From the NCBI GenBank assembly GCA_965112735.1, contig OZ218950.1, positions 6,386,001 to 6,450,000 on the forward strand: a stretch of DNA of 64,000 nt. Reading direction: 5' to 3'. The translations under genes and the position numbers were made by a program. The stretch's first letter is position 1. Each line of letters starts with the position of its first letter. The notes under the pieces were generated by a model that saw nothing but the letters and a program-made list of their open reading frames with translations, had not been told where the DNA came from and ran no database searches. Positions 11,683 through 38,097 of the stretch are shown piece by piece. Source of the DNA: Phaeosaccion multiseriatum. Lineage: Eukaryota > Protista > Ochrophyta, other classes.

Positions 11683-13167
11683 ATGAGGGGGGAGAGGGGC
11701 GATGCTACGCCTGGGGCAGGGACAGCGGCTCTGAGGACTGTGGCCAGCCTCATCTCCGACAAAGCTCTGTGGGGGGTGTGCAAGGAGGTCGATGAGGTCA
11801 CCACCCGCACTCTGAGGATCAACGCCGAAATGCCCGAGCGTGTCCAGCAGCGCATGCTGAGTCTGCTGAAGCGGCAGCAGCAAGAGGAGGGGAGAAGCGC
11901 TGCTTTGGCTTCGTCTTCCGCGACTATGCGTACTGCCTCTGCTGCTCCATCTACTGGCTGTGAGGAAAGACGTACTGCGGAGGGAGCGCGAAGATCGGGG
12001 AGGATTCGGGCGAGGCAGGAAGCGCAGCAGCAGCAGGAGCGACGTGGGAAGAGGCAGCGCAATGAGGCTGGATGTCCTGGTGAGGGGGGATTTTTTCGCG
12101 TGGTGTCTGTGGAGCTCGGCCTCAGCACGTACCTACATTCTGAGTACGATGCCAAGGTTTGTGCTGATGAGGCTCTCGTAGGGAAGGCACTCGCGCTGCT
12201 GCCAGCATCGGTCAGGCTTGTGCGCTTCTCTGAGTACTTCAATCAGGCCGACGTATGTCTTCCTGGCACAGTTGTGGAAGTGGAGCTTGGCCGGAAATTC
12301 AACAAACACATCGATCTCCCTGCCTCTCTGAAGAAGATCAAGTTTGAAATGGACTCGGATTTCAATCAGCAGTTGGTCCTTCCTTGTGGTGTGGAGGAGG
12401 TGCAGATGGGGTATGCCTTTAACCTCCCCCTGGAGCTGCCTGCCTCGCTGAAGAACATCAAATTCGGCTATCTCTTCAATCAGCACGTGGTCCTTCCTTG
12501 TGGTGTGGAGGAGGTGGAGATGGGGTATTACTTCAACCTCCCTCTGGATCTGCCTGCCTCCCTGAAGAAGATCAAGTTTTATAGGTACTCTTCCTTCAAT
12601 CAGCAGTTGGTCCTTCCTTGTGGTGTAGAAGAGGTGGAGATGGGGCGTGACTTTAACCGCCCTCTGGACTTGCCTGCCTCTCTGAAGAAGATCAAATTTG
12701 CCTATCGCTTCAATCAGCACGTGGTCCTTCCTTGTGGTGTGGAGGAGGTGCAGATGGGGCGTGACTTTAACCTCCCTCTGGAGCTGCCTGCCTCTCTGAA
12801 GAAGATCAAATTTTATGAGGGATCGGAGTTCAATCAACAGTTAGTCCTTCCTTGTGGTGTGGAGGAGGTGGAGATGGGGTATCACTTTAACCTCCCTCTG
12901 GAGCTGCCTGCCTCTCTGAAGAAGATCAGACTTGGTTATCACTTCAATCAGCAGATGGCTCTTCCTTGTGGTGTGGAGGAGGTGCAGATGGGGTATGACT
13001 TTAACCTCCCTCTGGAGCTGCCTGCTTCTCTGCGGACTCTGAAACTGGGATGGAATTACACCTGCCCTTTGGAGAGCCTGCCTGCTGGACTGAGGAAGCT
13101 TTGGGTTAGGGCCAACTGCCTGCTGCCTGCAGATCAACCCGAGGGGCTAAAGGTGTTTCGCTATTAA
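11683..13167 (+). CDS. FNIP-repeat protein 2, 494 aa from the conserved ATG (an in-frame upstream ATG at 11446 gives 573 aa), 6 double repeats
   Basis: Same architecture as FNIP1; the ATG at 11683 is the one conserved in all paralogues. Confidence 0.92.
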   Translation: MRGERGDATPGAGTAALRTVASLISDKALWGVCKEVDEVTTRTLRINAEMPERVQQRMLSLLKRQQQEEGRSAALASSSATMRTASAAPSTGCEERRTAEGARRSGRIRARQEAQQQQERRGKRQRNEAGCPGEGGFFRVVSVELGLSTYLHSEYDAKVCADEALVGKALALLPASVRLVRFSEYFNQADVCLPGTVVEVELGRKFNKHIDLPASLKKIKFEMDSDFNQQLVLPCGVEEVQMGYAFNLPLELPASLKNIKFGYLFNQHVVLPCGVEEVEMGYYFNLPLDLPASLKKIKFYRYSSFNQQLVLPCGVEEVEMGRDFNRPLDLPASLKKIKFAYRFNQHVVLPCGVEEVQMGRDFNLPLELPASLKKIKFYEGSEFNQQLVLPCGVEEVEMGYHFNLPLELPASLKKIRLGYHFNQQMALPCGVEEVQMGYDFNLPLELPASLRTLKLGWNYTCPLESLPAGLRKLWVRANCLLPADQPEGLKVFRY

Positions 13168-14246
13168 GGGGTGACGAGCCTCAAGTGAATTGGAGGGGCA
13201 CTCGAGGCCGAGAATGAAGGGTCAGGGGAGAGACTGGGCAGGAGAGAAGTCGACGCTGTATGGAGGTGTATTCACAGAAGAGCAGCGGCAGGGAGGAAGG
13301 AGCTGTACCGTAACAGTGAGGCGCCAAGGTGGGTCAGGATCAGGGTCAGAGGGTCAGGGGGTCAGCCATGGCATGGTTGAGAGTTAGGGCCGCCCTCAAT
13401 CTCTCTCGACCTTGGTCAGACCCCCCGGGGAGGTAGGGAGAGAGAAAGAGGGCCCCCTACTTGCAACCCCTCGGCGGTGTCGGAGGGGGCAGCGGCGATG
13501 GCCGCAGAGGGAGGAGGAGGAGGAGGAGGAGGAGGAGGAGGAGGAGGAGGAGGAGGAGGAGGAGGAGGAGGGGCAGGGGAGGAGCATGATGAATGGACGG
13601 CAGCTTCGACCCCCTTCAACGGAGGGGCTCTCAGCAGCAGCAAAAGGAAGCCCAGCACCAGCAGCACCGGCGACCCTCCCGACGCGCAGCCCCAGCCTCA
13701 TGTTCAGCGGCGGCACTGCTTGGGCCAAGGGCGGGATTCGTGGTCTATGTGCCCGATCCCTGATAGTCCACCCTCCCGCTCCTCCTCCCTGTCCCGCTAC
13801 GGGGCGTCTGCAGGGGCTGGTACACGCCCCCCGGGGGAGAGGGAGCCTCGTGTCTGCCTGGTCCGGATGGAGACAAAGGTGAGCGATCATTTCATGCGGA
13901 CATCGAGTCAACCCTCCTCCCATTCTCCTTGCGCTGTATGGGAAGGGGATGTGTGTTGCTCTCTCGCTTCTCTCGAACTGACTTGCCGCCACGTACTCTC
14001 TGACCCCTCCTCTTTGATCTGGCTCTCTCTCTCTGCTCTCTCCATCTCTTTTACCGTCTCTCTGTGTGCCTCTCTTTCTCCAACCCTCTGTTGCATTGCT
14101 CGAAATCTGCCTTTCTCCCCCTCCTCTGTTGCCCTCTCCTTCTCACTCGCGGTATCTCTCTCTCACACATAATTGTCTCTCTCTTTCCCTCCTTCTCTCT
14201 CTCTTTTCTGCTGCTGCATCGCTCCATCTCTGATCTCTACTCACAG

Positions 14247-14861
14247 CTCGGGCCTACATGTCTCTGAACGACCTCTCCTCCGCCAGCGCTCACCTCGCCA
14301 GGGCACTAGAAGTGGATCCTCACTGTCCAGGAGGTGCGTTGGTGGGGAGGGAGGATGGCAGTAGATGGGGGGGGGGGGGGGGGGGGGGACTATGTGGGGT
14401 TGCAGGGAAGACAAGCAGAGGAAGGGAAGTGCCTTCGTGGGGTGTCAAGCGGGCAGGAGGTGGAGGCGGGGGCGGCGGCGGCGGCGGCGGCGGCGGAGGA
14501 GGAGGAGAAGGAGGCGGTGGGTTGTCAAGGATGAAGAGCAGAGGAAGGACCACTCACAGCCTCACCCACTTCAGGCTCCTCTCCTGTTCCTAATTGCACG
14601 GTCGTCCGTCTGTTGTGCGCCCCCTTCGCCCCTCCCTCCCTACGTCCTTCGCTCCCCTCCCCTCCCCTCCCTCCAGCCTATATGGACCTTGGTCAGTTGC
14701 GCATGCAGGAGGGCAAGGTGGAGGAGGCGCTTTGTCTGTACGAGAAGGGCGTGCTCCACTGGCGCTACTTGCACGAGCTGCACGATGCCATGACGTGTCT
14801 GCTTGTGGCCAAGGAGCACCTCTCTGCCAAGGAGGAGCTGGGGATGGGGGACGAGGAGTGA
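14247..14861 (+). CDS. Tom70-like TPR module, copy 2 (exons 14247-14333, 14677-14861; upstream exon frameshifted)
   Basis: Same two exons, open; the upstream exon ending 13878 is out of phase relative to the other copies. Confidence 0.45.
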
Positions 14862-15115
14862 AGCAGGAGGGGAGGGGAGAGGAGTAGCGTAGAGTAAGGT
14901 CTGGTGTACTCTTGGCAGCAGGACTGAGAGGAGCGTCAAGGTGGGGAGCGCCGCAGGGAAGCTCAGCAACAGCGGAGACGTGCAAGTACTCAGAGTAGGG
15001 AGAGGCAGAGGCAGCAATTACCCTATCAATGAATCAAAGGCCCTCTTCAGCCGCGCTCTACCCGTACCCGCTTAGCTTCCATCCATCTGTGACTGGATTG
15101 GCTGGATTCTACCCG

Positions 15116-15373
15116 TCGGCTCCAGGCGACAGAAGCCGTAGCCCCCTCCAGGCTTCGGGCTTCTGGCCGCAGGCCAGCGCAGGCTTCTGGCCGCAGGCCA
15201 GTGGTCAGGCTTCAGGCTTCTCAGGCTGGGAGAAAAATGGGGGACTTGGCAGGCTTCTCGCTACTTTCTGCAGGCTTCTGGCCGCAGGCCAGCCGCAGGC
15301 TTCTTATTTTCGGCCGCAGGCCGCCGCAGGCTTCTGCTTTATCGGGGGCCCGAGAAACCTCGCCTGGAGCCGA
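15116..15373. mobile_element. 258-bp MITE, 14-bp TIR TCGGCTCCAGGCGA, 6-bp TSD TACCCG
   Basis: Perfect TIRs with TACCCG on both sides. The empty site GGATTCTACCCGAGGACC is present upstream of FNIP1, 2 and 4. Internal CAGGCTTC repeats. Confidence 0.92.
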
Positions 15374-15394
15374 TACCCGAGGACCTTGCCCACA

Positions 15395-15945
15395 TCCGAC
15401 CAAGAATATGGGGACGGCCACAAATCACTTATGATTGATGTCACGCTCACAGATGCCACCAACATCACCAATCGGGCCAAGGCATCGAAGGAGGCACTCG
15501 CGGCAGCCAAGAAGGCTGAAGCAACCAAGCGGACGAGATATGGGGTGCCACAGGTAGGCATGGAAGGCCAGCGTGGGGATATCCACTATGACCCCACGAG
15601 GTACCACCTCGTCCCTTTCGCAATGGAACAGCAAGGCGCATTTGGTCCTTCTGCTCAGTCGTTTATGAAAACCCTTGCCACCCCACATGGCTGGGGGGCA
15701 CGAACATCTGGACATGAGGGCTTATGCGAGAGCTGTTTGCGTCATTCGGCGGCGATTAGCCGTAGCGCTCCAGCGGGCCCGACACGAACGATCGGTTCGA
15801 CACAGGATCCTGGCTGGTATCAACTTTGTTCCAATGGGGAGAACTGATGAGTCAGAGGGACACGACCTCGAGGGCTAAGTTCCCCCGGGGCGGTGAGACA
15901 TTACTTTTAGACAACCATAGATGGCACTTAAGGGTGTAATATATT
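15395..15945 (+). mobile_element. 5'-truncated non-LTR retrotransposon (CRE-like), restriction-like endonuclease C-terminus plus 3' UTR, frameshifted
   Basis: LMIDVT..AAKKAEATKRTRY..LVPFAMEQQGAFGPSAQSFMKTLA, then after a frameshift RRLAVALQR; ends in an AT-rich tail; absent from the homologous site of FNIP1, 2 and 4. Confidence 0.8.
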
Positions 15946-16107
15946 ACAGCCTTTTTTTGGCAGACGGAGCAGCTAGTAGGGCAGCGAGAGACGCAAGAGG
16001 GAAGAGGAAGTAGTAGCAGTGGTGGCAGAGGACGGAGCAGGGCGGTCCCAAGGAGGGCCCCAGGACAGAAAGAAGAGATTCGCCGGGGGAAGGTCGAGGG
16101 GGGAGAA

Positions 16108-17628
16108 ATGAGGGGGGAGACGGGCGATGCTACGCCTGGGGCAGGGACAGCGGCTCTGAGGACTGTGGCCAGCCTCATCTCCGACAAAGCTCTGTGGGGG
16201 GTGTGCAAGGAGGTCGATGAGGTCACCACCCGCACTCTGAGGATCAACGCCGAAATGCCCGAGCGTGTCCAGCAGCGCATGCTGAGTCTGCTGAAGCGGC
16301 AGCAGCAAGAGGAGGGGAGAAGCGCTGCTTTGGCTTCGTCTTCCGCGACTATGCGTACTGCCTCTGCTGCTCCATCTACTGGCTGTGAGGAAAGACGTAC
16401 TGCGGAGGGAGCGCGAAGATCGGGGAGGATTCGGGCGAGGCAGGAAGCGCAGCAGCAGCAGGAGCGACGTGGGAAGAGGCAGCGCAATGAGGCTGGACCT
16501 CCTGGTGAGGGGGGCTTCTTTCGCGTGGTGTCTGTGGAGCTCGGTCTCAAGACCTACCGAGATGATGACGAGGAGCTCGGCCTCGGGACGTACCAAGATG
16601 ACGACGCCAAAGTATCTGCTGATGGGGCTCTCGTAGGGAAGGTACTCGCGCTGCTGCCAGCATCGGTCAGGCTTGTGCGCTTCTCTGAGTCTTTCAATCA
16701 GGCCGACGTATGTCTTCCTGGCACAGTTGTGGAAGTGGAATTCGGGCGGCACTTTAACAAACACGTCGATCTCCCCGCCTCTCTGAAGAAGATCAAGTTT
16801 GTGGAGTCCTCGGAGTTCAATCAGCAGTTGGTCCTTCCTTGCGGTGTGGAGGAGGTGCAGATGGGGTGTGACTTTAACCTGCCTCTGGAACTGCCTGCCT
16901 CTCTGAAGAAGATCACATTCGGTTGGAGCTACAACCAGCACGTGGTCCTTCCTTGTGGGGTGGAGGAGGTGGAGATGGGGTTTGACTTTAACCACCCTCT
17001 GGACCTGCCTGCTTCTCTGAAGAAGATCAGATTTGCCTATCTCTTCAATCAGCACGTGGTCCTTCCTTTTGGTGTGGAGGAGATGGAGATGGGGTATCGC
17101 TTTAACCTCCCTCTGGATCTGCCTACCTCTCTGAAGAAGATCACATTCGGTTGGAGCTACAACCAGCACGTGGTCCTTCCTTGTGGGGTGGAGGAGGTGG
17201 AGATGGGGTTTGACTTTAACCTCCCCCTTGAGCTGCCTGCCTCGCTGAAGAAGATCAGATTTGGCTATGACTTCAATCAGCACGTGGTCCTTCCTTGTGG
17301 TGTGGAGGAGATGGAGATGGGGTATCGCTTTAACCTCCCTCTGGAACTGCCTACCTCTCTGAAGAAGATCAGATTTGATGAGGAATCTCGCTTCAATCAG
17401 CACGTGGTCCTTCCTTGTGGTGTGGAGGAGGTGGAGATGGGGGATGCCTTTAACCTCCCTCTGGAGCTGCCTGCTTCTCTGCGGACTCTGAAACTGGGAC
17501 GGTATTACACCTGCCCTATGGAGAGCCTGCCTGCCGGACTGAGGAAGCTTTGGGCTCGGACCAACTACCCGCTGCCTGCGGATCTACCCGAGGGGCTGGA
17601 GGTGTTTCGCTTGGAAGGGATGGCGTGA
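16108..17628 (+). CDS. FNIP-repeat protein 3, 506 aa, 6 double repeats
   Basis: Same architecture as FNIP1. Confidence 0.92.
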   Translation: MRGETGDATPGAGTAALRTVASLISDKALWGVCKEVDEVTTRTLRINAEMPERVQQRMLSLLKRQQQEEGRSAALASSSATMRTASAAPSTGCEERRTAEGARRSGRIRARQEAQQQQERRGKRQRNEAGPPGEGGFFRVVSVELGLKTYRDDDEELGLGTYQDDDAKVSADGALVGKVLALLPASVRLVRFSESFNQADVCLPGTVVEVEFGRHFNKHVDLPASLKKIKFVESSEFNQQLVLPCGVEEVQMGCDFNLPLELPASLKKITFGWSYNQHVVLPCGVEEVEMGFDFNHPLDLPASLKKIRFAYLFNQHVVLPFGVEEMEMGYRFNLPLDLPTSLKKITFGWSYNQHVVLPCGVEEVEMGFDFNLPLELPASLKKIRFGYDFNQHVVLPCGVEEMEMGYRFNLPLELPTSLKKIRFDEESRFNQHVVLPCGVEEVEMGDAFNLPLELPASLRTLKLGRYYTCPMESLPAGLRKLWARTNYPLPADLPEGLEVFRLEGMA

Positions 17629-18206
17629 CTTGACAGAATCGGAGGGGCACACGAGGCCGAGAAAGAACGTTCAAGAGCGAGGCTGGGCAGGATGTGCATT
17701 CACATGAGAGCAGCAGCAGCGGCAGCAGCAGCAGCCGCAGGGAGGAAGGGGCTGCCTCTTGAGAGTGAAGCGCCAAGCTGGATCAGGGTCAGGGCTAGAG
17801 GGTCAGGGGATCTTAGCACGGCTGAGTGTGAGGTTGGCCTCCATTGTCTTCTCGAATCGAGCGTGACTTCATGTGTGCGTGTCTCCATCCCCTGCTGGCA
17901 GATGATGTCTAGCAACGTAGGCAAGGTGCTCAGGAGCGGAGCAGCAAGAGCAAGAGGAGACAAGGAGGCGATGCGGACAAACTAAAAGAGCTCAAGCAAA
18001 CAGGATGAGCGGCATGGCAATAGTCATTCAGTCAGTCAGTCAGTCAGTCAGTAAATCGCCCTTGCGATGCGAAGGCGGAAGGAGGCAACAGCAGCAGTGG
18101 TTATGCCAGATTGTTCAGTTTCAGTTTTGTAGAGCCAAAACCAGCCTACAAAAGGTCAATCAAAAGGAAGCCAGTGTTTCTGTGGGGGGGCACCAAGCAC
18201 TTGTTC

Positions 18207-18238
<32 letters not shown>

Positions 18239-18626
18239 TACAGGTCCTCGCAACGCTCCATACGGGGCAGAGGGTAGGGGGGGGCGGGGCTGGGGGGCTA
18301 CCTATGTGTCTGTCTCCAGGAGCATTGGCCAGAGTACACACCAGACCGCACACCACAGTTCACAGCCCCGCAGTCAGTCAGTGAGTCAGTGGGAGCTCGT
18401 CCCTTGGAACCTTGGTCTCCGCCCCGCTCCTTTCGGGTCCAACGCGATGGATGTTCGCTGCACCATTCAAACTGCAATGCGCTGAGGTTTCTTTGTACAC
18501 AAGCGACATGATGCCACGGGGGCAGGCGTTACAACTCCACTCTCACCCTCCGTTGAGAGAGACACAATAGAGAGAGAGAGAGGAGAGAGTCCGCCAGTAA
18601 GTCGGTGGGAGAGTTCGGCCAGTAAG

Positions 18627-23989: not shown

Positions 23990-24119
23990 GGTCCAGCTAT
24001 CGTCCAAAGAGAGGGCGCCGACCTTTTTGGCCCCTATGACTCTCAATTTTTTATTATCGTACCGACTCTACAAGTCGATGTATTACTATTAGAGAGCGCT
24101 GTCTGGCCCAAGGGCAGAG

Positions 24120-26277: not shown

Positions 26278-26732
26278 CCTTCCTCCTCGTCTCTCCCTTC
26301 TTGCTCTCTCGTGTTCTACCCCTCTCTGTCTCTCTCTCGCTCGCTCGCTCTCGCTCTCGCTCTCCCCGACTCCCTCGCCCCCCGTATCCCCCCGGCCTCA
26401 CCCCGCCACGAGCTGCCATCCTCAACCTCTTGATCCTGCCCTTGACTCAATTCCTATAAATGCGACAGCCACCACGGTCAAACCGCCTTCCCCTGTTCTC
26501 GATCTTCGGGTGCTTCCGCTTGGCGTGGGGATGGGGTCTCGTCTTCTTGTGGTGCACGAGCAGCGACGGTAGAGCACGGGGCGCCCTGCTGTGTGCTCTC
26601 TCTCCACTGGAAGGGGAAGGGAGGCACAGCAGCGGGGAGGAAGCAACAGCAGCGGGGAGGAAGGGAGTGGAGAAGAAGCAGCAGGAGCAGAAGAAGCAAC
26701 AGCCAAGTCTCCCGGCGGCGATTGCACCTCGC

Positions 26733-29121
26733 ATGCACGCGAGGCGAGTCGTGGCTGCAGTAAGCAAGGGCGTGTTTCTTCGCCCACGGCCACCAGGGGG
26801 GGCTGTCCTCGCCGCTGCCACTGCTGCTGCTGCTACCACCACCCCACCTTCTCGATTAGAACGGTCTGCTACAGCTCTTGCGGGCGGGGGGGGGCGTTCT
26901 ACGCGACGTGTGTTGGGGGCGTACGTGCTTCATCCGACGCTGAGAGGGCTCACCACGGGAACAGCAGCAGCGCCGCCTTCCTCGGTGCCTTCGGCTGCCT
27001 CTGCTGCCGCTATTTGCTCGAAGCGGATCTCACCTGCTGTTGCTGCGGTGTGCCGTGGGCATTTCGCTTCTACTGCTGCCCTTGCTGAGGGAAACACCTA
27101 CAACCTTGAGGAGCTGCAGCAGCAGCAGGATCAGCTTGCTTGGCTCCTCGAGCTGCAGGCTGCGGAAGGTTCGTTCCATCCTGGCACCGCTGGTGCTGCT
27201 GAAGGTGCTGGTGCTTCGACAGCCAGTGCCGCCGTGCCCAGTCAACGGGGCTGGAGCATCGAAGGAACGCGAGTGTCAGCCATAGAGGGACGAGCCAGTG
27301 GGGAAGAGCAAGGAGGAGGGGGTGGAGGGATAATGAGCAGCCAGCGTGTGCTATGGGTGGAGTCTGTGGCCTCAACCATGGATGCTGTCAAGACACGAAT
27401 AAAGGCCGGCCAGCTGGATGAGCAGCAGGCACAGCTCGCGGGAGGAGGAGGAGGAGGAGGAAGAGGAGGAGGAGGAGGAGGAGGAGGAAGGCGACAAGTG
27501 TTTGCCTTGGCCGCACGGGAGCAGGTGGCAGGTAGGGGAACTCGCGGGAGAAGCTGGGAAGGAACACGAGGCAATGTGTTCCTCACAGTGGCCATCCCGA
27601 TCGACGTCATCCCCGTGCCCCTCAGCATCACGCCCCTACGCGTGGGCACCCTCATTGCTGCCGTGGTGCAAGCCAGGCTAGACTCTACCGAGACTCAGCC
27701 GTGCGCTACCGCTTCCGCCACGGTTGCGGCAGAAGCTGGAGACGAGCTTGCTGCCATTGCTGCTGCTGCCACTGCTGGTGGTGGCGGTGGTGAGAGGGCC
27801 ATGGAGGAGGAGGAGGAGGACACTATCCTACCTTGCCCGGCCGGCGCCGCTGCGAAGCTAAAGTGGCCCAATGATGTGCTGATTGGGGACGAGAAGGTGA
27901 GCGGGGTGCTTCTCGAGGCGGAGCTGCCCTACATGCTAGTCGGTATTGGCATCAACGTGCGGCACAAACCTGCCGTGCCTCAGGAGGGCCCACAGAGGGG
28001 TCGGCCCGCCACCAGGTGAGGGCGGGGGATGGCACTGGATGGGGGGCTCTTATGTGTGCTGGAGATTTGGCAAGATATGCATTCGGCCCAACGGGTACCG
28101 AGCGAGTGGGTGGGACCACAGCCGCCAAGTACAAAGTTTTCTTTCTCTGCTATTGATTGACTCCTCCGGGGGGTTTGTTGATCTCTGATTGGAGTGAGGG
28201 CTGACGGAAGCAGCAGGGACCGCAGCGAGCGGGCTTGTCCTCCTCACCTCCGCCCTCTTTTCTCTTTGTGCCCTCGGCCTTTTGTGTTGGTTGTCCCCAC
28301 AATCGTCGTGCTTGCGTCCCTCAGCTTGGCCGATCACGGCGCGGACGTTACGGACGAAGCCGTGGAGAGTATTGTGGAGGACTTAGTGGAGAGTATTAAG
28401 CATTGGGTGCAGGAAGGGACGGACAACGGTCCCGCCGCCCTGGCGGAGTGGCAGCGATGGGTGGACTGGAATGCGCCTCTCCGCATCAGGTAAAGAAGCG
28501 CACACATTCGGAGTGTGTTGGGGTGGGGTGGGTTGGAGTGGGTTGAGCGGGTGGGCCTACGACTGTGCTGCGAATTTAAATTTCACAGCACCGCCGCTAG
28601 TGACAGAGGAATTCTGTGCTGCGCTTGGGCGGAATCTCAAATGATCGGTTTATGCACCTCACCCTTCATTCATTCATTCGTTCGTTCGTTCATTCATTCA
28701 TTCGAGCCCTGATCCGTTTCTTCTACGTTCCCCCGGCTGTGCTTGCTGAGCTCTCCCATCGGCCGTCAAACACACACCACTCTCCCCCCCCCGGCCATCT
28801 CACTGACAACTCTCCTCCTCTCAATTCTACGCTTGGCCCACTCACTCACTCACTCACTCACTCACTCACTCACTCACTCACTCACTCACTCACTCACTCA
28901 CTCACTCACTCACTCCCTCTTTCACTCATTCACTCACTTATTCACTCACTCTCTCTCTCTCCCCCTCACTCTCTCTCTCTCTCCCTCACTCACCCGCTCA
29001 CTCGCACAGGGAGGATGACGTGGAAGTGACGCCCCTGGGGGTGCAGGCAGACGGACAGCTCAGGGTGAGGGATTCCGTCACGGGAGAGGAGAGACTCCTC
29101 ATCACTGAGTACCTATTCTGA
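26733..29121 (+). CDS. birA: Biotin--protein ligase (BPL/BirA catalytic domain) with a long N-terminal presequence; 3 exons
   Basis: SVASTMD, AREQVAGRGTRGRSW, GNVFLT, LKWPNDVLIGDEKVSGVLLE, VGIGINV, last exon GVQADGQLRV..EYLF*. Start chosen at MHARRVVAAVSKG (transit-peptide-like). Confidence 0.9.
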
Positions 29122-29469
29122 ATGTGTCCGAAGTGTGTGTTCTGAGTGTTCTTTGCCCTGCAGAGGAGCAGCTGCAAGCACCACTGGCGTCCCTTACCAT
29201 CAGGAGGAGAAGCAAAGTAGCTGCACCACCGCCAGCCGCAGCAGCAGCAGCTGAATCAGGAGCGGACCATCCGCGGTACTCGCACAGGGCGGGGTAGAGC
29301 GAATTTTCGCGAATTCTCACACCCGTGAACGCAAAGTCCGCCCCCTTCTCTTGGACTTCAGCTCTTCTTTCCTTTCGACTTTGAAGGGGGGGGGGCATCG
29401 TCGTTGAAAGGCCTCGGAGGTGTGGGAGGAGGCAGCGGCGATGGCAGCAGATGGAGGAGGAGGACCACG

Positions 29470-30590: not shown

Positions 30591-31042
30591 AGCAGGGGGG
30601 GAGGGGAGGGGAGAGGGCGGAGGGGAAAGGAGTAGCGCAGAGTAAGGTCTGGTGTACTCTTGGCAGCAGGACTGAGAGGAGCGTCCAGGAGGGGAGCGGC
30701 GCGTCAGTCGCAGGGGGCAGGGAAGCTCAGCAACAGCGGAGCCGTGCAAGTACTCAGAGTAGGGAGAGGCAGAGGCAGCAATTACCCTATCAATGAATCA
30801 AAGGCCCTCTTCAGCCCCCGAATCCGCTTGGCTTCCATCCATCTGTGACTGGATTGGCTGGATTCTACCCGAGGACCTTGCCCGCAGCTTGGCAGACGGA
30901 GCAGCAGCCAGTAGGGCAGCGAGAGACGCAAGAGAGAAGAGGAAGTAGTAGCAGTGGTGGCAGAGGACGGAGCAGGGCGGTCCCAAGGAGGGCCCCAGGA
31001 CAGAAAGAAGAGATTCGCCGGGGGAAGGTCGAGGGGGGAGAA

Positions 31043-33223
31043 ATGAGGGGGGAGAGGGGCGATGCTACGCCTGGGGCAGGGACAGCGGCTCTGAGGACTG
31101 TGGCCAGCCTCATCTCCGACAAAGCTCTGTGGGGGGTGTGCAAGGAGGTCGATGAGGTCACCACCCGCACTCTGAGGATCAACGCCGAAATGCCCGAGCG
31201 TGTCCAGCAGCGCATGCTGAGTCTGCTGAAGCGGCAGCAGCAAGAGGAGGGGAGAAGCGCTGCTTTGGCTTCGTCTTCCGCGACTATGCGTACTGCCTCT
31301 GCTGCTCCATCTACTGGCTGTGAGGAAAGATGTCCTGCGGAGGGAGCGCGAAGATCGGGGAGGATTCGGGCGAGGCAGGAAGCGCAGCAGCAGCAGGAGC
31401 GACGTGGAAAGAGGCAGCGCGACGAGGCTGGACCTCCTGGTGAGGGGGGCTTCTTTCGCGTGGTGTCTGTGGAGCTTGGCCTCAGCACGTACCTACATTC
31501 TGAGTACGATGCCAAGGTTTGTGCTGATGAGGCTCTCGTAGGGAAGGCACTCGCGCTGCTGCCACCATCGGTCAGGCTTGTGCGCTTCTCTGAGTATTTC
31601 AATCAGGCCGACGTATGTCTTCCTGGCACAGTTGTGGAAGTGGAATTCGGGTGGCACTTTAACAAACACATCGATCTCCCTGCCTCTCTGAAGAAGATCA
31701 AGTTTAAATGGTACTCGGAGTTCAATCAGCAGTTGGTCCTTCCTTGTGGTGTGGAGGAGGTGCAGATGGGGCGTCACTTTAACCTCCCTCTGGACCTGCC
31801 TGCCTCTCTGAAGAGGATCAAATTTCATGAGGAATCGGAGTTCAATCAGCAGTTGGTCCTTCCTTGTGGTGTGGAGGAGGTGGAGATGGGGCGTGACTTT
31901 AACGTCCCTCTGGAGCTGCCTGCCTCTCTGAAGAAGATCAAGTTTAGTTGGAAATTCAATCAGCAGGTGGTCCTTCCTTGTGGTGTGGAGGAGATGGAGA
32001 TGGGGCATGACTTTAACCTCCCTCTGGAGCTGCCTGCCTCGCTGAAGAAGATCAAATTCGGCTATCACTTCAATCAGCACGTGCTCCTTCCTTGTGGTGT
32101 GGAGGAGGTGGAGATGGGGTATGACTTTAACCTCCCTCTGGAGCTGCCTGCCTCTCTGAAGAAGATCAAGTTTGTAGGGCGCTCTTACTTCAATCAGCAG
32201 TTGGTCCTTCCTTGTGGTGTGGAGGAGGTGGAGATGGGGAGTGACTTTAACGTCCCTCTGGAGCTGCCGGCCTCTCTGAAGAAGATCAAGTTCTGCGGAG
32301 GATTTAATCAGCACGTGGTCCTTCCTTGTGGTGTGGAGGAGGTGGAGATGGGGCATGCCTTTAACCTCCCTCTGGAGCTGCCTGCCTCTCTGAAGAAGAT
32401 CAAATTCGGCTTTCACTTCAATCAGCATGTGGTCCTTCCTTGTGGTGTGGAGGAGGTGCAGATGGGGTTTGACTTTAACCTCCCTCTGGAGCTGCCTGCC
32501 TCTCTGAAGAACATCAAGTTCGGCGATCACTTCAATCAGCAGTTGGTCCTTCCTTGCGGTGTGGAGGAGGTGCAGATGGGGAATGCCTTTAACCTCCCTC
32601 TGGACCTGCCTGCCTCTCTGAAGAAGATCAAATTTTATGAGGGATCGGATTTCAATCAACAGTTAGTCCTTCCTTGTGGTGTGGAGGAGGTGGAGATGGG
32701 GGGTGACTTTAACCTGCCTCTGGAGCTGCCTGCCTCTCTGAAGAGGATCAAATTCGGCTATCGCTTCAATCTGCACGTGGTCCTTCCTTGTGGTGTGGAG
32801 GAGGTAGAGATGGGGCTTGACTTTAACCTCCCTCTGGAGCTGCCTGCCTCGTTGAAGAAGATCAGCTTTGGTAGCAAGTTCAATCAGCAGTTGGTCCTTC
32901 CTTGTGGTGTGGAGGAGGTGGAGATGGGGTATCACTTTAACCTCCCTCTGGAGCTGCCTGCCTCTCTGAAGAAGATCAAGTTTTATGAGTACTCGGATTT
33001 CAACCAGCAGCTGGTCCTTCCTTGTGGTGTGGAAGAGGTGGAGATGGGGTTTTACTTTAATCACCCTCTTGAGCTGCCTGCTTCTCTGCGGACTCTGAAA
33101 CTGGGACGGAAATACACCTGCCCTTTGGAGAGCCTGCCTGCCGGACTGAGGAAGCTTTGGGCTGGGACCAACTACCCGCTGCCTGCAGATCTACCCGAGG
33201 GGCTGGAGGTGTTTCGCTGGTAA
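31043..33223 (+). CDS. FNIP-repeat protein 4, 726 aa, 12 double repeats
   Basis: Same architecture; conserved ATG at 31043. Confidence 0.92.
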   Translation: MRGERGDATPGAGTAALRTVASLISDKALWGVCKEVDEVTTRTLRINAEMPERVQQRMLSLLKRQQQEEGRSAALASSSATMRTASAAPSTGCEERCPAEGARRSGRIRARQEAQQQQERRGKRQRDEAGPPGEGGFFRVVSVELGLSTYLHSEYDAKVCADEALVGKALALLPPSVRLVRFSEYFNQADVCLPGTVVEVEFGWHFNKHIDLPASLKKIKFKWYSEFNQQLVLPCGVEEVQMGRHFNLPLDLPASLKRIKFHEESEFNQQLVLPCGVEEVEMGRDFNVPLELPASLKKIKFSWKFNQQVVLPCGVEEMEMGHDFNLPLELPASLKKIKFGYHFNQHVLLPCGVEEVEMGYDFNLPLELPASLKKIKFVGRSYFNQQLVLPCGVEEVEMGSDFNVPLELPASLKKIKFCGGFNQHVVLPCGVEEVEMGHAFNLPLELPASLKKIKFGFHFNQHVVLPCGVEEVQMGFDFNLPLELPASLKNIKFGDHFNQQLVLPCGVEEVQMGNAFNLPLDLPASLKKIKFYEGSDFNQQLVLPCGVEEVEMGGDFNLPLELPASLKRIKFGYRFNLHVVLPCGVEEVEMGLDFNLPLELPASLKKISFGSKFNQQLVLPCGVEEVEMGYHFNLPLELPASLKKIKFYEYSDFNQQLVLPCGVEEVEMGFYFNHPLELPASLRTLKLGRKYTCPLESLPAGLRKLWAGTNYPLPADLPEGLEVFRW

Positions 33224-33600
33224 GGGATGACGTGCCTCAACTGAGTTGGAGGGGCCCTCGATGCCGAGTGTGAAGGGTCAGGGGAGAGAAGAAGACACTG
33301 CGTGGATTTGCATTCACAGCACAGCAGCAGCAGGGAGGAAGGAGCTGTACCGTAACAGGAAAGCACCAAGGTGGGTCAGGATCAGGGCCAGAGGATCAGG
33401 GGGTCATGGCATGGTTGAGAGTTAGGGCCGCCTTCATTCTCTCTCGACCTTGGTCAGACCCCCCGGGGAGGTAGGGAGAGAGAAAGAGCGCCCTCTACTT
33501 GCAACCCCTCGGCGGTGTCGGAGGGGGCAGCGGCGATGGCCGCAGAGGGAGGAGCCGGAGGAGGAGGAGGAGGAGGAGGGGCAGGGGAGGAGCATGATGA

Positions 33601-34882
33601 ATGGACGGCAGAGCTCCGACCCCCTTCAACGGAGGGGCTCTCAGCAGCAGCAAAAGGAACCCCAGCGCCAGCAGCACCGGCGACCCTCCCGACGCACAGC
33701 CCCAGCCTCATGTTCAGCGGCGGCACTGCTTGGGCCAAGGGCAGGACTCGCGGCCTCGATGCCCGATCCCCGAGACTCCACCCTCCCGCTCCTCCTCCCT
33801 GTCCCGCTACGGTGCGTCTGCAGGGGCTTGGTACGCGCCCCCCGGGGGAGAGGGAGCATCTCCTCTGCCTGGTCCGGATGGAGACAAAGGTGAGCGATCA
33901 TTTCATTCGGAAATCGCGTCACCCCCCCCCCCCCCCTCTCCTTGCGCTGTATGGGAAGGGGATCTGTGTTGCTCTCTCACTTCTCTCGAACTGACCTGCA
34001 GGCACGTACTCTCTGACCCCTCCTCTTTGTTCTGTCGCTCTCTCTCTATCGCCCTCTTCATCTCTTTCGTGTGCCTCTCGTTCTCCAACCCTCTGTTGCA
34101 TTGCTCGGAACCTGCCTTTCCCCCCCTCCCCTGTCGCCCTCTCCTTCTCTCCCTCTCTCCTTCTCACTCCCCCTCTTTCCCTCCCTCTCTCTCTCCCTCC
34201 CTCCCTCCCTCTCTCTCTTCTGCTGCTGCATCGCTCCATGTCTGCTATCTACTCACAGCTCGGGCCTACATGTCTCTGAACGACCTCTCTTCCGCCAGCG
34301 CTCACCTCGCCAGGGCACTAGAGGTGGATCCTCACTGTCCAGGAGGTGCGTTGGTGGGGAGAGAGGATGGCAGTGGATGGGGGGGGGCGGGGGGGGGTAG
34401 GACTAGGTGGGGTTGCAGGGAAGACAAGCAGAGGAAGGGAAGTGCCTTCGTGGGGTGTCAAGCGGGCAGGAGGTGGAGGCGGGGGCGGCGGCGGCGGCGG
34501 CGGAGGAGGAGGAGGAGGAGGAGGAGGAGAAAGAGGTGATGGGTTGTCAAGGATGAAGAGCAGAGGAAGGACCACTCACAGCCTCACCCACTTCAGGCTC
34601 CTCTCCTGTTCCTAATTGCACGTTCGTCCGTCTGTTGTGCGCCCCCTTCGCCCCTCCCTCCCTACGTCCTTCGCTCCCCTCCCCCCCCTCCCTCCAGCCT
34701 ATATGGACCTTGGTCAGTTGCGCATGCAGGAGGGCAAGGTGGAGGAGGCGCTTTGTCTGTACGAGAAGGGCGTGCTCCACTCGCGCTACTTGCACAAGCT
34801 GCACGATGCCATGACGTGTCTGCTTGTGGCCAAGGAGCACCTCGCTGCCAAGGAGGAGCTGGGGATGGGGGACGAGGAGTGA
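33601..34882 (+). CDS. Tom70-like TPR module, copy 4 (exons 33601-33889, 34259-34345, 34698-34882)
   Basis: Three exons in phase from ATG 33601. Confidence 0.5.
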
Positions 34883-35155
34883 AGCAGGAGGGGAGGGGAG
34901 GAGAGAGGGCGGAGGGGAAAGGAGTAGCGTAGAGTAAGGTCTGGTGTACTCTTGGCAGCAGGACTGAGAGGAGCGTCAAGGTGGGGAGCGCCGCAGGGAA
35001 GCTCAGCAACAGCGGAGACGTGCAAGTACTCATAGTAGGGAGAGGCAGAGGCAGCAATTACCCTATCAATGAATCAAAGGCCCTCTTCAGCCGCGCTCTA
35101 CCCGTACCCGCTTAGCTTCCATCCATCTGTGACTGGATTGGCTGGATTCTACCCG

Positions 35156-35413
35156 TCGGCTCCAGGCGACAGAAGCCGTAGCCCCCTCCAGGCTTCGGGC
35201 TTCTGGCCGCAGGCCAGCGCAGGCTTCTGGCCGCAGGCCAGTGGTCAGGCTTCAGGCTTCTCAGGCTGGGAGAAAAATGGGGGACTTGGCAGGCTTCTCG
35301 CTACTTTCTGCAGGCTTCTGGCCGCAGGCCAGCCGCAGGCTTCTTATTTTCGGCCGCAGGCCGCCGCAGGCTTCTGCTTTATCGGGGGCCCGAGAAACCT
35401 CGCCTGGAGCCGA
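35156..35413. mobile_element. 258-bp MITE, second copy (TIR TCGGCTCCAGGCGA, TSD TACCCG)
   Basis: Appears identical to 15116-15373, at the same site. Confidence 0.92.
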
Positions 35414-35431
35414 TACCCGAGGACCTTGCCC

Positions 35432-35988
35432 ACATCCGACCACGAATATGGGGAGGGCCACAAATCACTTATGACTGATGTCACGCTCACAGATGCCACC
35501 AACATCACCAATCGGGCCAAGGCATCGAAGGAGGCACTCGCGGCAGCCAAGAAGGCTGAAGCAACCAAGCGGACCAGGTATGGGGTGCCACAGGTAGGCA
35601 TGGAAGGCCAGCGTGGGGATATCCACTATGACCCCACGAGGTACCACCTCGTCCCTTTCGCAATGGAACAGCAAGGCGCATTTGGTCCTTCTGCTCAGAC
35701 GTTTATGAAAACACTTGCCACCCCACATGGCTGGGGGGCACGAACATCTGGACATGAGGGCTTATGCGAGAGCTGTTTGCGTCATTCGGCGGCGATTAGC
35801 CGTAGCGCTCCAGCGGGCCCGACACGAACGATCGGTTCGACACAGGATCCTGGCTGGTATCAACTTTGTTCCAATGGGGAGAACTGATGAGTCAGAGGGA
35901 CACGACCTCGAGGGCTAAGTTCCCCGGGGCGGTGAGACATTACTTTTAGACAACCATAGATGGCACTTAAGGGTGTAATATATATCAT
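35432..35988 (+). mobile_element. 5'-truncated CRE-like LINE, second copy, flanked by ACCTTGCCC direct repeats
   Basis: Same RLE peptide and frameshift; ACCTTGCCC at 35423-35431 and 35989-35997 (TSD-like). Confidence 0.82.
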
Positions 35989-36156
35989 ACCTTGCCCGCC
36001 GCTTGGCAGACGGAGCAGCAGCCAGCAGGGCAGCGAGAGATCCAAGAGAGAAGAGGAAGTAGTAGCAGTGGTGGCAGAGGACGGAGCAGGGCGGTCCCAA
36101 GGAGGGCCCCAGGACAGAAAGAAGAGATTCGCCGGGGGAAGGTCGAGGGGGGAGAA

Positions 36157-38097
36157 ATGAGGGCGGAGACAGGCGATGCTACGCCTGGGGCAGGGACAGC
36201 GGCTCTGAGGACTGTGGCCAGCCTCATCTCCGACAAAGCTCTGTGGGGGGTGTGCAAGGAGGTCGATGAGGTCACCACCCGCACTCTGAGGATCAACGCC
36301 GAAATGCCCGAGCGTGTCCAGCAGCGCATGCTGAGTCTGCTGAAGCGGCAGCAGCAAGAGGAGGGGAGAAGCGCTGCTTTGGCTTCGTCTTCCGCGACTA
36401 TGCGTACTGCCTCTGCTGCTCCATCTACTGGCTGTGAGGAAAGATGTCCTGCGGAGGGAGCGCGAAGATCGGGGAGGATTCGGGCGAGGCAGGAAGCGCA
36501 GCAGCAGCAGGAGCGACGTGGAAAGAGGCAGCGCGACGAGGCTGGACCTCCTGGTGAGGGGGGCTTCTTTCGCGTGGTGTCTGTGGAGCTTGGCCTCAGC
36601 ACGTACCTACATTCTGAGTACGATGCCAAGGTTTGTGCTGATGAGGCTCTCGTAGGGAAGGCACTCGCGCTGCTGCCAGCATCGGTCAGGCTTGTGCGCT
36701 TCTCTGAGTCTTTCAATCAGGCCGACGTATGTCTTCCTGGCACAGTTGTGGAAGTGGAATTCGGGTGGCACTTTAACAAACACATCGATCTCCCTGCCTC
36801 TCTGACGAAGATCAAGTTTTGTCCGCTCTCGGATTTCAATCAGCAGTTGGTCCTTCCTTGTGGTGTGGAGGAGGTGCAGATGGGGCGTCACTTTAACCTC
36901 CCTCTGGACCTGCCTGCCTCTCTGAAGAGGATCAAATTTCATGAGCGATCTCACTTCAATCAGCAGTTGGTCCTTCCTTGTGGTGTGGAGGAGGTGGAGA
37001 TGGGGTATGACTTTAACCTCCCCCTGGAGCTACCTGCCTCTGTGAAGAAGATCAAATTCGGCTATCACTTCAATCAGCACGTGGTCCTTCCTTGTGGTGT
37101 GGAGGAGGTGCAGATGGGGGGTGACTTTAACCTCCCTCTGGACCTGCCTGCCTCTCTGAAGAGGATCAAATTTCATGAGCGATCTCACTTCAATCAGCAG
37201 TTGGTCCTTCCTTGTGGTGTGGAGGAGGTGGAGATGGGGTGTGCCTTTAACCTCCCCCTGGAGCTACCTGCCTCTGTGAAGAAGATCAAATTCGGCTATC
37301 ACTTCAATCAGCACGTGGTCCTTCCTTGTGGTGTAGAGGAGGTGGAGATGGGGTGTGCCTTTAACCTCCCCCTGGAGCTACCTGCCTCTGTGAAGAAGAT
37401 CAAATTCGCCTATCGCTTCAATCAGCACGTGGTCCTTCCTTGTGGTGTGGAGGAGGTGGAGATGGGGTGTGACTTTAACCTCCCTGTGGAGCTGCCTGCC
37501 TCGCTGAAGAAGGTCAGCTTTGGCTGGAAGTTTAATCAGCACGTGGTCCTTCCTTGTGGTGTGGAGGAGGTGCAGATGGGGGGTGACTTTAACCTGCCTC
37601 TGGAGCTACCTGCCTCTGTGAAGAAGATCAAATTCGCCTATCGCTTCAATCAGCACGTGGTCCTTCCTTGTGGTGTGGAGGAGGTGGATATGGAGGGTGA
37701 CTTTAACCTCCCTGTGGAGCTGCCTGCCTCCCTGAAGAAGGTCAGCTTTGGCTGGAAGTTCAATCAGCACGTGGTCCTTCCTTGTGGTGTGGAGGAGGTG
37801 GAGATGGGGGATGACTTGAACCTCCCTCTGGAGCTGCCTGCCTCTCTGAAGAAGATCATATTTGGCTATGACTTCAATCAGCAGTTGGTCCTTCCTTGTG
37901 GTGTGGAGGAGGTGGAGATGGGGAGTAACTTTTTTCACCCTCTTGAGCTGCCTGCTTCTCTGCGGACTCTGAAACTGGGATGGAATTACACCTGCCCTTT
38001 GGAGAGCCTGCCTGCTGGACTGAGGAAGCTTTGGGCTAGGATCGACTACCCGCTGCCCGCGGATCTACCCGAGGGGCTGAAGGTGTTTCGCTTGTAA
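36157..38097 (+). CDS. FNIP-repeat protein 5, 646 aa, 10 double repeats
   Basis: Same architecture; conserved ATG at 36157. Confidence 0.92.
   Translation: MRAETGDATPGAGTAALRTVASLISDKALWGVCKEVDEVTTRTLRINAEMPERVQQRMLSLLKRQQQEEGRSAALASSSATMRTASAAPSTGCEERCPAEGARRSGRIRARQEAQQQQERRGKRQRDEAGPPGEGGFFRVVSVELGLSTYLHSEYDAKVCADEALVGKALALLPASVRLVRFSESFNQADVCLPGTVVEVEFGWHFNKHIDLPASLTKIKFCPLSDFNQQLVLPCGVEEVQMGRHFNLPLDLPASLKRIKFHERSHFNQQLVLPCGVEEVEMGYDFNLPLELPASVKKIKFGYHFNQHVVLPCGVEEVQMGGDFNLPLDLPASLKRIKFHERSHFNQQLVLPCGVEEVEMGCAFNLPLELPASVKKIKFGYHFNQHVVLPCGVEEVEMGCAFNLPLELPASVKKIKFAYRFNQHVVLPCGVEEVEMGCDFNLPVELPASLKKVSFGWKFNQHVVLPCGVEEVQMGGDFNLPLELPASVKKIKFAYRFNQHVVLPCGVEEVDMEGDFNLPVELPASLKKVSFGWKFNQHVVLPCGVEEVEMGDDLNLPLELPASLKKIIFGYDFNQQLVLPCGVEEVEMGSNFFHPLELPASLRTLKLGWNYTCPLESLPAGLRKLWARIDYPLPADLPEGLKVFRL

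Follow-up and report, generated by a model that had tools for sequence, protein, structure and literature searches.

A tandem FNIP leucine-rich-repeat gene cluster with patchwork arrays, very probably shaped by unequal crossover, conversion tracts and diversifying selection on loops

In the 64,000-nucleotide stretch of DNA analyzed here (the window), we observe a tandem cluster of FNIP genes with mosaic structure, conversion tracts, discordant segment histories and a codon-position signature in the variable loops, and this cluster has very probably been shaped by unequal crossover, conversion tracts and diversifying selection on the loops. Recombination among the paralogous FNIP genes is well supported. 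Patchwork arrays with selected loops are ordinary for clusters of repeat-receptor genes, and they are clearly documented in this one. All five window genes match the Pfam FNIP family (PF05725) with 148-276 bits against a gathering cut-off of 21 (E 1e-44 to 1e-84, with 4-13 matched stretches each), FNIP3 is homologous to Crov588 (6NYR; E 1.2e-66), with its variable windows V1 and V2 aligning to the xx of FGxxFN, and the family is homologous to Crov539 (7ZAL; E 7.5e-17). Judged from these similarities, the five are FGxxFN/FNIP leucine-rich-repeat proteins. The genes are as follows.

7428 to 9275, plus strand: FNIP1 (open reading frame, PF05725 E 4.5e-57, unit annotation), consisting of N domain, N-cap unit, 9 internal units (8064-9125) and C-cap.
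11683 to 13167, plus strand: FNIP2 (open reading frame, Pfam, units), counted from the conserved MRG.. start in a frame open from 11446, with 6 internal units (12316-13017).
16108 to 17628, plus strand: FNIP3, with 6 internal units (16771-17466), among them a two-unit block present twice (units 3-4 and 5-6).
31043 to 33223, plus strand: FNIP4, with 12 internal units (31676-33073) in a mosaic array with tracts common to FNIP5, to paralogues A, D and B, and to G/FNIP2.
36157 to 38097, plus strand: FNIP5, with 10 internal units (36790-37947), including two doubled two-unit blocks; a chimera of E/FNIP3-type upstream region, FNIP4-type N domain and FNIP2/4-type 3′ flank.

Besides the internal units, each of the five genes contains one N-cap and one C-cap unit, and our counts of internal units for FNIP2 to FNIP5 agree with those of an initial annotation of this DNA. 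The family has at least 165 matches in the 67-Mb genome (22 contigs), with 11 close paralogues on the same chromosome as the window genes; the cluster is tandemly duplicated and the genes look intronless. The N-terminal domain of approximately 180 residues is specific to this family and has no detectable relatives. An Atlas comparison gave an F-box lead for this region with a score of only 0.81; Pfam returned no F-box match at E<10, a family profile searched against the PDB gave no match, and AlphaFold modelled the conserved N-terminal motif with a mean pLDDT of 53.7. In the window genes, no NB-ARC, kinase or transmembrane signalling domain was detected.

The internal unit is 38 or 40 residues long (114/120 bp) and comprises two leucine-rich-repeat turns (19/21 + 19), an FG-type turn followed by an MG-type turn, with motifs L-K-K-I-K-F-G-x-x-F-N-Q... 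and V-E-E-V-E-M-G-x-x-F-N-L... and turns of 19-21 residues. Each turn carries one variable loop window: V1 follows the F of “KF”, and V2 is formed by the two residues behind “MG”. In the 40-residue class, a loop of five residues replaces G-x-x. The LxxLxFGxxFN motif is present, with variability peaking at the xx codons and MG replacing FG in the second turn, and the remainder of the unit is nearly invariant, silent sites included.

Adjacent segments of the paralogues have discordant histories, as demonstrated by segment identity matrices and four-gamete patterns. Upstream regions group at 97-100% as {E, FNIP3, FNIP5} and {D, FNIP2, FNIP4}, whereas the closest N-domain pairs are FNIP4-FNIP5 (99%), D-FNIP2 (99%) and E-FNIP3 (98%), the cap unit divides {FNIP3, FNIP4, FNIP5, B} from {D, E, FNIP2}, and the 3′ flank of FNIP5 resembles those of FNIP2 and FNIP4, with that of FNIP3 resembling FNIP1. 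FNIP3 and FNIP5 had been taken as simple positional duplicates, a view that the chimeric make-up of FNIP5 contradicts. When the PHI test was applied to N domain and cap together, none of 1000 permutations attained the observed statistic (P<0.001); within single units the signal is weak (P 0.28 for 38-residue and 0.04 for 40-residue units), since each unit offers few informative sites.

Sharp-edged shared tracts within the arrays point the same way, and four of them are given below.

12765 to 13042, plus strand: conversion patch FNIP2-G, 278 bp with 1 mismatch to C1:6368343-6368620, minus strand.
31597 to 31831, plus strand: start of the FNIP4 array, matching FNIP5 36711-36945 at every base outside the first variable window of unit 2.
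32717 to 32929, plus strand: FNIP4-A tract, 213 bp exact against C1:6292513-6292725, minus strand, in FNIP4 units 10-12.
32876 to 32983, plus strand: FNIP4-D tract, 108 bp exact against C1:6327962-6328069.

On either side of the FNIP2-G patch there are 17-36 mismatches per 100 bp, and the overlap of the FNIP4-D and FNIP4-A tracts implies a switch of donor within FNIP4 unit 12. Paralogues G and A are inverted and lie 28 kb from FNIP2 and 125 kb from FNIP4, respectively. Longest-fragment permutation gave P<1e-4 for each of FNIP2-G, FNIP4-A, FNIP4-D and FNIP4-FNIP5, uncorrected for approximately 800 possible pair-by-offset comparisons, a correction that the FNIP4-A tract would survive (analytic P estimate ~1e-9); FNIP3-E and FNIP5-E were not significant. 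A 36-nt marker reported earlier occurs only at 12811 (FNIP2 unit 6) and 32633 (FNIP4 unit 10), with 0 occurrences expected by chance. These recombination tests, together with the discordant segments, uphold the proposal that the arrays exchange sequence by ectopic gene conversion or unequal crossover. They do not uphold discrete 114/120-bp cassettes as the items exchanged, in that the tracts are arbitrary, approximately 100-300 bp long, and break within the invariant framework, and a match at one variable window carries no information on the following one.

Units do not cluster by gene. The unit tree requires 66 gene-label changes, compared to 76 +/- 2.3 for shuffled labels and a minimum possible of 12, so that strict clustering, which the initial annotation had named as a finding that would refute it, is absent. 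Among the 43 window units, the nearest relative lies in a gene outside the window for 21, in the same gene for 12 and in another window gene for 10, which, with the FNIP2-G and FNIP4-A tracts, bears out a donor pool extending beyond the window. The arrays of FNIP3 and FNIP5 are indeed unrelated in order, the best FNIP5 match of each FNIP3 unit having 12-16 mismatches, near the background of all unit pairs (mean 20, 5th percentile 11). The intragenic two-unit tandem duplications are likewise real, with HERSH/GYH and AYR/GWK doubled in FNIP5 and GWS-FD/..YR doubled in FNIP3.

Could such arrays have diverged in place by point mutation and selection only, with the shared variable windows convergent? 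GWK does occur in both FNIP1 and FNIP5, and AYR in both FNIP2 and FNIP5. Identical short V1 windows (GWK, GYD, GYH) often recur on frameworks 3-6 sites apart, as expected under mutation alone, and V1 identity predicts neither V2, the next window 58 bp away, nor the framework surrounding it; these recurrent windows may be old shared types or convergence, and not transfers. Nevertheless, we consider mutation and selection alone extremely unlikely as an account of the arrays, given exact tracts of 108-278 bp that span 2-4 variable windows (FNIP2-G with its 1 mismatch), the private silent marks carried in shared tracts (CAA..TTA, CTG CCG, GTA GAG), unit numbers that vary by gene and the doubling of two-unit blocks.

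An assembly or polishing artefact, in which mis-mapped reads or repeat-induced mis-joins created the patches and chimeric arrays, was also considered. Both the high repetitiveness of the arrays and the patch size of 100-300 bp, in the range of short reads, speak for it, and polishing of a long-read assembly with short reads is a conceivable source of patches of 200-300 bp. Yet frames stay open through arrays of 0.7-1.4 kb in 5 of 5 window genes and in most of 8 further paralogues, 22 contigs for 67 Mb suggest long reads spanning whole arrays, and the discordant histories extend to the unique, non-repeat N domain and flanks; we therefore regard an artefact as very unlikely.

The sequences flanking the arrays had been described as approximately 99% identical between copies, and the following features bear on this description.

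13168 to 14300, plus strand: duplicon spacer, to which 33224-34300 and part of the D-E copy correspond.
14575 to 16545, plus strand: homogenised tract defined by identity profiles, covering the leader, the retroelement fragment and the FNIP3 N domain in its 5′ half.
15393 to 15945, plus strand: 5′-truncated 3′ end of a retroelement inserted in the leader, with a twin at 35433-35985.
34597 to 36594, plus strand: homogenised tract again (second copy), extending from upstream of FNIP5 into the gene.
C1:6330-6331 kb, upstream of gene E: third copy of the homogenised tract, ~99% identical to 14575-16545.

Exactly 7 of 819 bases differ between 15029-15847 and 35069-35887 (at 15403, 15415, 15435, 15535, 15538, 15659 and 15673), as the initial annotation had counted, and the near-identity of the flanks holds for approximately 14.6-16.5 kb, where the three ~2-kb copies (E, FNIP3, FNIP5) are ~99% identical. 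It fails elsewhere: identity between the spacer at 13.0-14.3 kb and its counterparts drops to about 85-95% (5-17% divergence), and FNIP3 and FNIP5 have 3′ flanks without homology to each other. In all three duplicon pairs there are 0-3 mismatches per 150 bp in the tract and 3-39 in the spacer.

Seven mismatches in 819 bp beside unrelated arrays could mean that FNIP2-FNIP3 and FNIP4-FNIP5 are a very recent segmental duplication (~1%) whose arrays have since been re-sorted by exceptionally fast cassette shuffling. The nearest other genomic copy of the retroelement fragment is 98% identical, so its insertion and spread are recent, which would suit such a duplication. We find it unlikely, since the same duplicon is so much more diverged over the spacer, the ~99% tract is common to three copies, and FNIP5 differs from FNIP3 in its 3′ flank and has an N domain closest to that of FNIP4. 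Homology ends at the array start without resuming, as it would at a junction or a conversion tract but not around a scrambled interior, and the near-identical flank with unrelated arrays is a recombination junction or a conversion tract stopping at the array start. On sequence grounds, the ~99% flank is best read as a tract itself homogenised or pasted in three copies, not as a clock; it does not show that arrays were scrambled after a very recent duplication, and the high rate that had been deduced from it falls away. Near-identical flanks in clusters of this kind are thus unusable for dating the adjoining arrays.

The 272-residue open reading frame at 15029-15847 has no Pfam match and is probably leader/retroelement read-through, not a gene. 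The retroelement family is dispersed, with at least 40 genomic copies of 85-98% identity sharing a common 3′ end, and a long copy encodes a 1006-residue open reading frame whose RVT_1 match is weak and falls short of the Pfam cut-off (E 3.9e-4).

Nucleotide diversity in V2 codons is 0.39-0.70 at the first two positions; at the third it is 0.04-0.16, the same as at framework third positions (0.12-0.135), and codon-position diversity counts give a pN of 0.51 for V codons vs a framework pS of 0.17. Variation at positions 1-2 and not at 3 points to selection rather than hypermutation, and the pattern indicates that diversifying selection keeps a few loop residues varied. Two unit pairs, D.8/D.9 and F5.3/F5.5, differ by 4 and 2 bases, respectively, all within the 6-base V2 window, which very short conversion patches may explain.

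Such V2-only differences, and the retroelement fragment immediately upstream of three family members, would also fit programmed diversification, either VLR-like somatic or developmental cassette assembly or DGR-like mutagenesis by way of the neighbouring reverse-transcriptase element. We give this next to no probability. All genes are complete open frames, and a search of the window for a VLR-type incomplete acceptor with partial donor cassettes found five arrays in complete frames and no others, orphan cassette arrays included. The retroelement piece is a 5′-truncated copy of ~550 bp from the dispersed family, the conservation of V2 third positions argues against local hypermutation, and the DGR combination of intact reverse transcriptase, template/variable repeat pair and template-directed hypermutation was not found near the window genes. 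From the same V2-only pairs, it is a slim possibility that the cluster is a germline “cassette-exchange” recognition repertoire with loop-centred short patches, intact and broken paralogues as donors and an elevated, possibly targeted or mitotic, rate. If so, a stramenopile-type protist would possess rapidly re-sorting binding proteins analogous to antigen-receptor and antigenic-variation systems.

Under the favoured account of unequal crossover, conversion and selection, the invariant 114/120-bp framework would provide near-perfect homology between any two arrays, in or out of register, and hence allow unequal crossover, non-reciprocal conversion and flank homogenisation. Unequal crossover would add, delete and double units; non-reciprocal gene conversion would transfer tracts of 100-300 bp from one paralogue to another, even where the two are inverted and 28-125 kb apart; this process would likewise homogenise the unique flanks (leader, retroelement fragment and N domain) among copies, and diversifying selection on loop residues would prevent homogenisation of the variable windows. 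We infer the direction and rate of transfer, the limiting of homogenisation by selection and the binding of ligands by the variable edge. The cluster offers a clean, well-resolved leucine-rich-repeat repertoire outside plants and animals, with a uniform scaffold and diverse loops that recombination combined with selection would maintain. If the proteins are recognition molecules, e.g., against viruses, it would be a tractable model of innate-type recognition in algae and protists.

Plant leucine-rich-repeat resistance clusters (Cf-4/9, Xa21, RGC2) consist of tandem paralogues with unequal crossover, exchange and chimeric arrays, in which repeat numbers differ, solvent-exposed residues are diversified and flanks are homogenised. 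The FNIP cluster shares the tandem paralogues, chimeric arrays, varied repeat number, loop selection and homogenised flanks; FNIP is another leucine-rich-repeat class, in another organism, with no signalling domain detected. In lamprey VLR, VSG and chicken immunoglobulin pseudogene V systems, paralogous donor cassettes are copied into an expressed gene through short homologies. Variable pieces are here likewise copied from paralogous donors by conversion, but the window genes are all whole in the germline, an incomplete acceptor locus is absent, and the FNIP cluster yielded neither a deaminase nor other dedicated machinery. TAL-effector repeats are near-identical tandem units of ~34-40 residues with a two-residue variable position, in arrays reshuffled by recombination; FNIP units resemble them in these respects but form a leucine-rich-repeat solenoid, not a helical repeat, and nothing in their sequences points to nucleic-acid binding or to a one-repeat-one-target code.

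Significant homology in sequence links the cluster to the FGxxFN proteins Crov588 and Crov539, which share the FG-xx-FN motif, with xx loops the most variable part of an almost invariant scaffold. Huyton et al. 2022 (PMC9525666) place these most variable xx positions on the edge of the concave face and report family sizes of 557 in Dictyostelium, 104 in a brown alga and ~70 in CroV, so that a large family in a single species is also common ground. The motif period of this protein class is ~22 residues, and the turns of 19-21 residues seen here agree with it. The genes studied here differ in their two-turn super-unit of 38/40 residues, the five-residue loop of the 40-residue class and the family-specific N domain, and their mosaic of paralogue recombination was not analyzed in that study. 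Giant viruses carry the same repeat class as the FNIP genes.

The window DNA (C1:6386001-6450000) is about 58% GC, eukaryotic and microsatellite-rich, and comes from an assembly of 67 Mb in 22 contigs. Between 7.4 and 38.1 kb there are five open frames on one strand (FNIP1 to FNIP5), all five of which match Pfam FNIP (PF05725; E 1e-44 to 1e-84), and FNIP3 matches the solved FGxxFN leucine-rich-repeat (LRR) protein Crov588 (6NYR) with an E of 1.2e-66. Genome-wide, at least 165 matches to the family are present. The proteins contain, in order, a ~180-residue N-terminal domain, a cap unit of 39 residues, 6 to 12 internal units and a C-terminal cap, with each internal unit (38 or 40 residues, i.e., 114 or 120 bp) comprising two LRR turns. 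The two variable loop windows of each internal unit, V1 (after K-F) and V2 (two residues after M-G), align with the "xx" of FGxxFN in the alignment to Crov588. According to Huyton et al. (2022; PMC9525666), these positions are the most variable of the FGxxFN LRR class and lie along the edge of its concave surface. The core between V1 and V2 is an invariant, G/T-rich run (GGTGTGGAGGAGGTGGAGATGGGG) present in every unit, e.g., at window 16840-16875.

The N-terminal domain contains a conserved ~55-residue motif, A-A-L-R-x-V-A .. A-L-W-G-V-C-K-E-V-D-E .. T-S-R-T-L .. M-P, with 16 columns invariant across chromosomes in every member examined (genomic stretches L009-L028; window 16129-16300). The domain was unassigned in Pfam at E up to 10, a best score of 0.81 in the ESM Atlas assigned nothing, residues 1-182 had zero matches in a large word-indexed protein search, and a family profile found nothing among PDB sequences. 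An AlphaFold model of the motif, built from a 16-sequence alignment, was poor (mean pLDDT 53.7), and an F-box-like role for this domain is only a guess.

The initial annotation described gene duplicates with 99% identical flanks and rearranged arrays, and every one of its factual statements holds; its interpretation, shuffling of 114/120-bp cassettes, is partly supported. The two 819-bp stretches at 15029-15847 and 35069-35887, estimated to differ at about 7 positions, differ at exactly 7. Unit counts of 6, 6, 12 and 10 for FNIP2, FNIP3, FNIP4 and FNIP5 are correct (FNIP1 has 9), the 36-nt marker reported in FNIP2 and FNIP4 occurs at 12811 and 32633 only, and the doubled unit blocks in FNIP3 and FNIP5 are present. 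The FNIP3 and FNIP5 arrays were said to share almost no variable windows in order: the best FNIP5 match to each FNIP3 unit has 12-16 mismatches, compared to a mean of 20 over all unit pairs (5th percentile 11), so that, apart from the shared scaffold, the two arrays following the 99% flank are essentially unrelated.

Windowed comparison of the duplicon, i.e., the two-gene module FNIP2-FNIP3 that is repeated as FNIP4-FNIP5, demonstrated about 99% identity solely at about 14.6-16.5 kb, with the spacer at 13.0-14.3 kb showing 71-94% identity per 100 bp. Genes D and E, located 65-70 kb upstream, are a third copy of this module. All three pairwise comparisons between the three copies gave 0-3 mismatches per 150 bp in the ~99% tract and 3-39 in the spacer. 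The 99% flank is not usable as a clock for the arrays. Two copies of a retroelement are relevant to this tract:

Inside the ~99% tract: 5'-truncated 3' end of the retroelement, 550 bp; at least 40 copies exist, which are 85-98% identical and have a common 3' end.
C4:5393527-5396547 (fetched stretch L008, 3527-6547): long copy with a 1006-residue ORF and a weak RVT_1 match (E 3.9e-4).

The truncated 3' end of this retroelement is present upstream of FNIP3, FNIP5 and E, within a leader that precedes every family member. The copies, with their common 3' end and variable 5' truncation, show a LINE-like pattern. We rejected LINE 3' transduction as the route by which the ~99% tract spread, because some 800 bp of the tract also lie on the upstream side of the element. 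A 272-aa ORF at 15029-15847 was rejected as a gene; it is a read-through of leader and element, and matches no family.

Grouping of these genes depends on the segment analyzed. The upstream regions form the groups {E, FNIP3, FNIP5} and {D, FNIP2, FNIP4}; the N domains pair FNIP4 with FNIP5 (99% identity), D with FNIP2 (99%) and E with FNIP3 (98%); and the cap units separate {FNIP3, FNIP4, FNIP5, B} from {D, E, FNIP2}. The 3' flank of FNIP5 resembles those of FNIP2 and FNIP4, that of FNIP3 resembles FNIP1, and homology was absent when the FNIP3 and FNIP5 3' flanks were compared. These partitions are mutually incompatible, and FNIP5 is therefore a chimera. In a PHI-type test of the N domain plus cap, 0 of 1000 permutations were as extreme as observed; within single units, where informative sites are too few, PHI gave P values of 0.28 and 0.04. 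FNIP3 and FNIP5 do not fit the earlier picture of recent duplicates with a scrambled interior, since their homology breaks off where the arrays begin and is not regained further on, as in a crossover junction or conversion tract.

Addition of eight paralogues from outside the window (A, B, C, D, E and G on C1, H on C2 and I on C4) allowed 99 internal units to be parsed. An exact-match scan showed that the 278 bp of FNIP2 12765-13042 differ at a single position from paralogue G, which is inverted and lies at a distance of 28 kb, and that the sequence on either side of this patch has 17-36 mismatches per 100 bp. FNIP4 32717-32929 is an exact 213-bp match to paralogue A, which lies about 125 kb away in inverted orientation, and an overlapping 108 bp of FNIP4 exactly match D. 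The FNIP4 and FNIP5 arrays open with 235 bp that differ in one variable window and are otherwise identical. A longest-fragment permutation, restricted to polymorphic sites and kept in unit register, was significant (P<1e-4) for FNIP2-G, FNIP4-A, FNIP4-D and FNIP4-FNIP5, and no signal for FNIP3-E and FNIP5-E; it replaced an ungapped diagonal permutation, which we dropped as unfair because the 114/120-bp length differences break register. Since both G and A lie in the opposite orientation to the window genes, their patches would most naturally have arisen by non-reciprocal conversion. A polishing artefact is an unlikely source of the shared patches, a reading opposed by the open frames of the FNIP genes, by an assembly in only 22 contigs, and by mosaicism that is seen in unique sequence too.

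The suggestion that the donor pool extends beyond the window was borne out: the nearest relative of a window unit was in an outside gene for 21 of 43 units, in the same gene for 12 and in another window gene for 10. On the maximum-likelihood unit tree there were 66 gene-label changes, compared to 76 +/- 2.3 with shuffled labels and 12 under strict clustering, i.e., units do not cluster strictly by gene and position. No candidate source of the doubled FNIP3 block elsewhere in the genome exceeded 90% identity. The 38- and 40-residue unit classes are old, with 4 changes on this tree. Two of the paralogues are probably broken family members, judging from their reading frames:

L002 5699-7606: gene D, open frame stopping without a C-terminal cap unit.
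C4:507-509 kb (L006): gene I, split into two frames.

Both could serve as conversion donors despite this breakage, with D having the 108 exact bp in common with FNIP4.

Edge repeats usually hold positional identity. The first internal unit does so here, with 5 changes across 13 units on the unit tree, and the array-opening unit begins with CTC CC(T/C), not CTG CCT, in all arrays, e.g., at window 16771, 31676 and 36790. These edge units are spared the mixing that exchange brings about among interior units.

Recent tracts are 100-300 bp in length, and their breakpoints can fall at any point of the invariant framework. Identical V1 windows occurred in 34 cross-gene pairs (background probability 0.95%); in these, V2, 58 bp away, was identical in 15% (background 4.5%) and the next V1 in 9%, and the framework near V2 had 3.2 mismatches vs 3.4 in random pairs. 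V1 identity is thus scarcely carried to neighbouring windows, which, together with the tract lengths, argues against a discrete 114/120-bp cassette as the exchange unit. For some of these short V1 types (GWK, GYD, GYH), the sharing may reflect old age or convergence.

Nei-Gojobori pS is uninformative at V codons because hardly any pair of these codons encodes the same amino acid, and we replaced it with diversity per codon position. In V2, nucleotide diversity was 0.39-0.70 at codon positions 1-2 and 0.04-0.16 at position 3, with framework third positions at 0.12-0.135; pN of V codons was 0.51 vs a framework pS of 0.17. A local mutator would strike all three codon positions, so the V2 pattern speaks for selection rather than hypermutation, and indicates that selection retains amino-acid changes while homogenisation proceeds in the background. 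Units 8 and 9 of D, and units 3 and 5 of FNIP5 (window 36910-37263), are identical over at least 114 bases except for 4 and 2 substitutions, respectively, every one of which falls within the 6 bases of V2. These differences could reflect either micro-conversion, by very short patches whose edges are invisible in the invariant framework, or very strong focused selection.

The model with the best support is a tandem LRR gene cluster that undergoes ordinary non-allelic homologous recombination. In it, changes in unit number and chimeric genes would result from unequal crossover, gene conversion would move tracts between paralogues and homogenise scaffold and flanks, and diversifying selection would keep loop residues different. 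Evidence for somatic assembly or for retroelement-driven mutagenesis was absent in the sequence analyzed. Similar recombination-plus-selection behaviour is known in plant LRR resistance-gene clusters, which our model of the FNIP cluster matches. The model also fits the published picture of FGxxFN families exploiting loop variability (PMC9525666).

Two further ORFs are present in the window:

26460-28019, + strand: ORF of 519 residues encoding a biotin/lipoate ligase domain (PF03099, E 1e-10).
40643-42922, + strand: 759-residue ORF carrying five WRKY19-type zinc-finger repeats (Pfam PF24906, E 4e-38).

The ligase ORF separates the two halves of the FNIP cluster, and a 75-bp tandem repeat is located at window 40849-41056, within the region of the WRKY19-type ORF.
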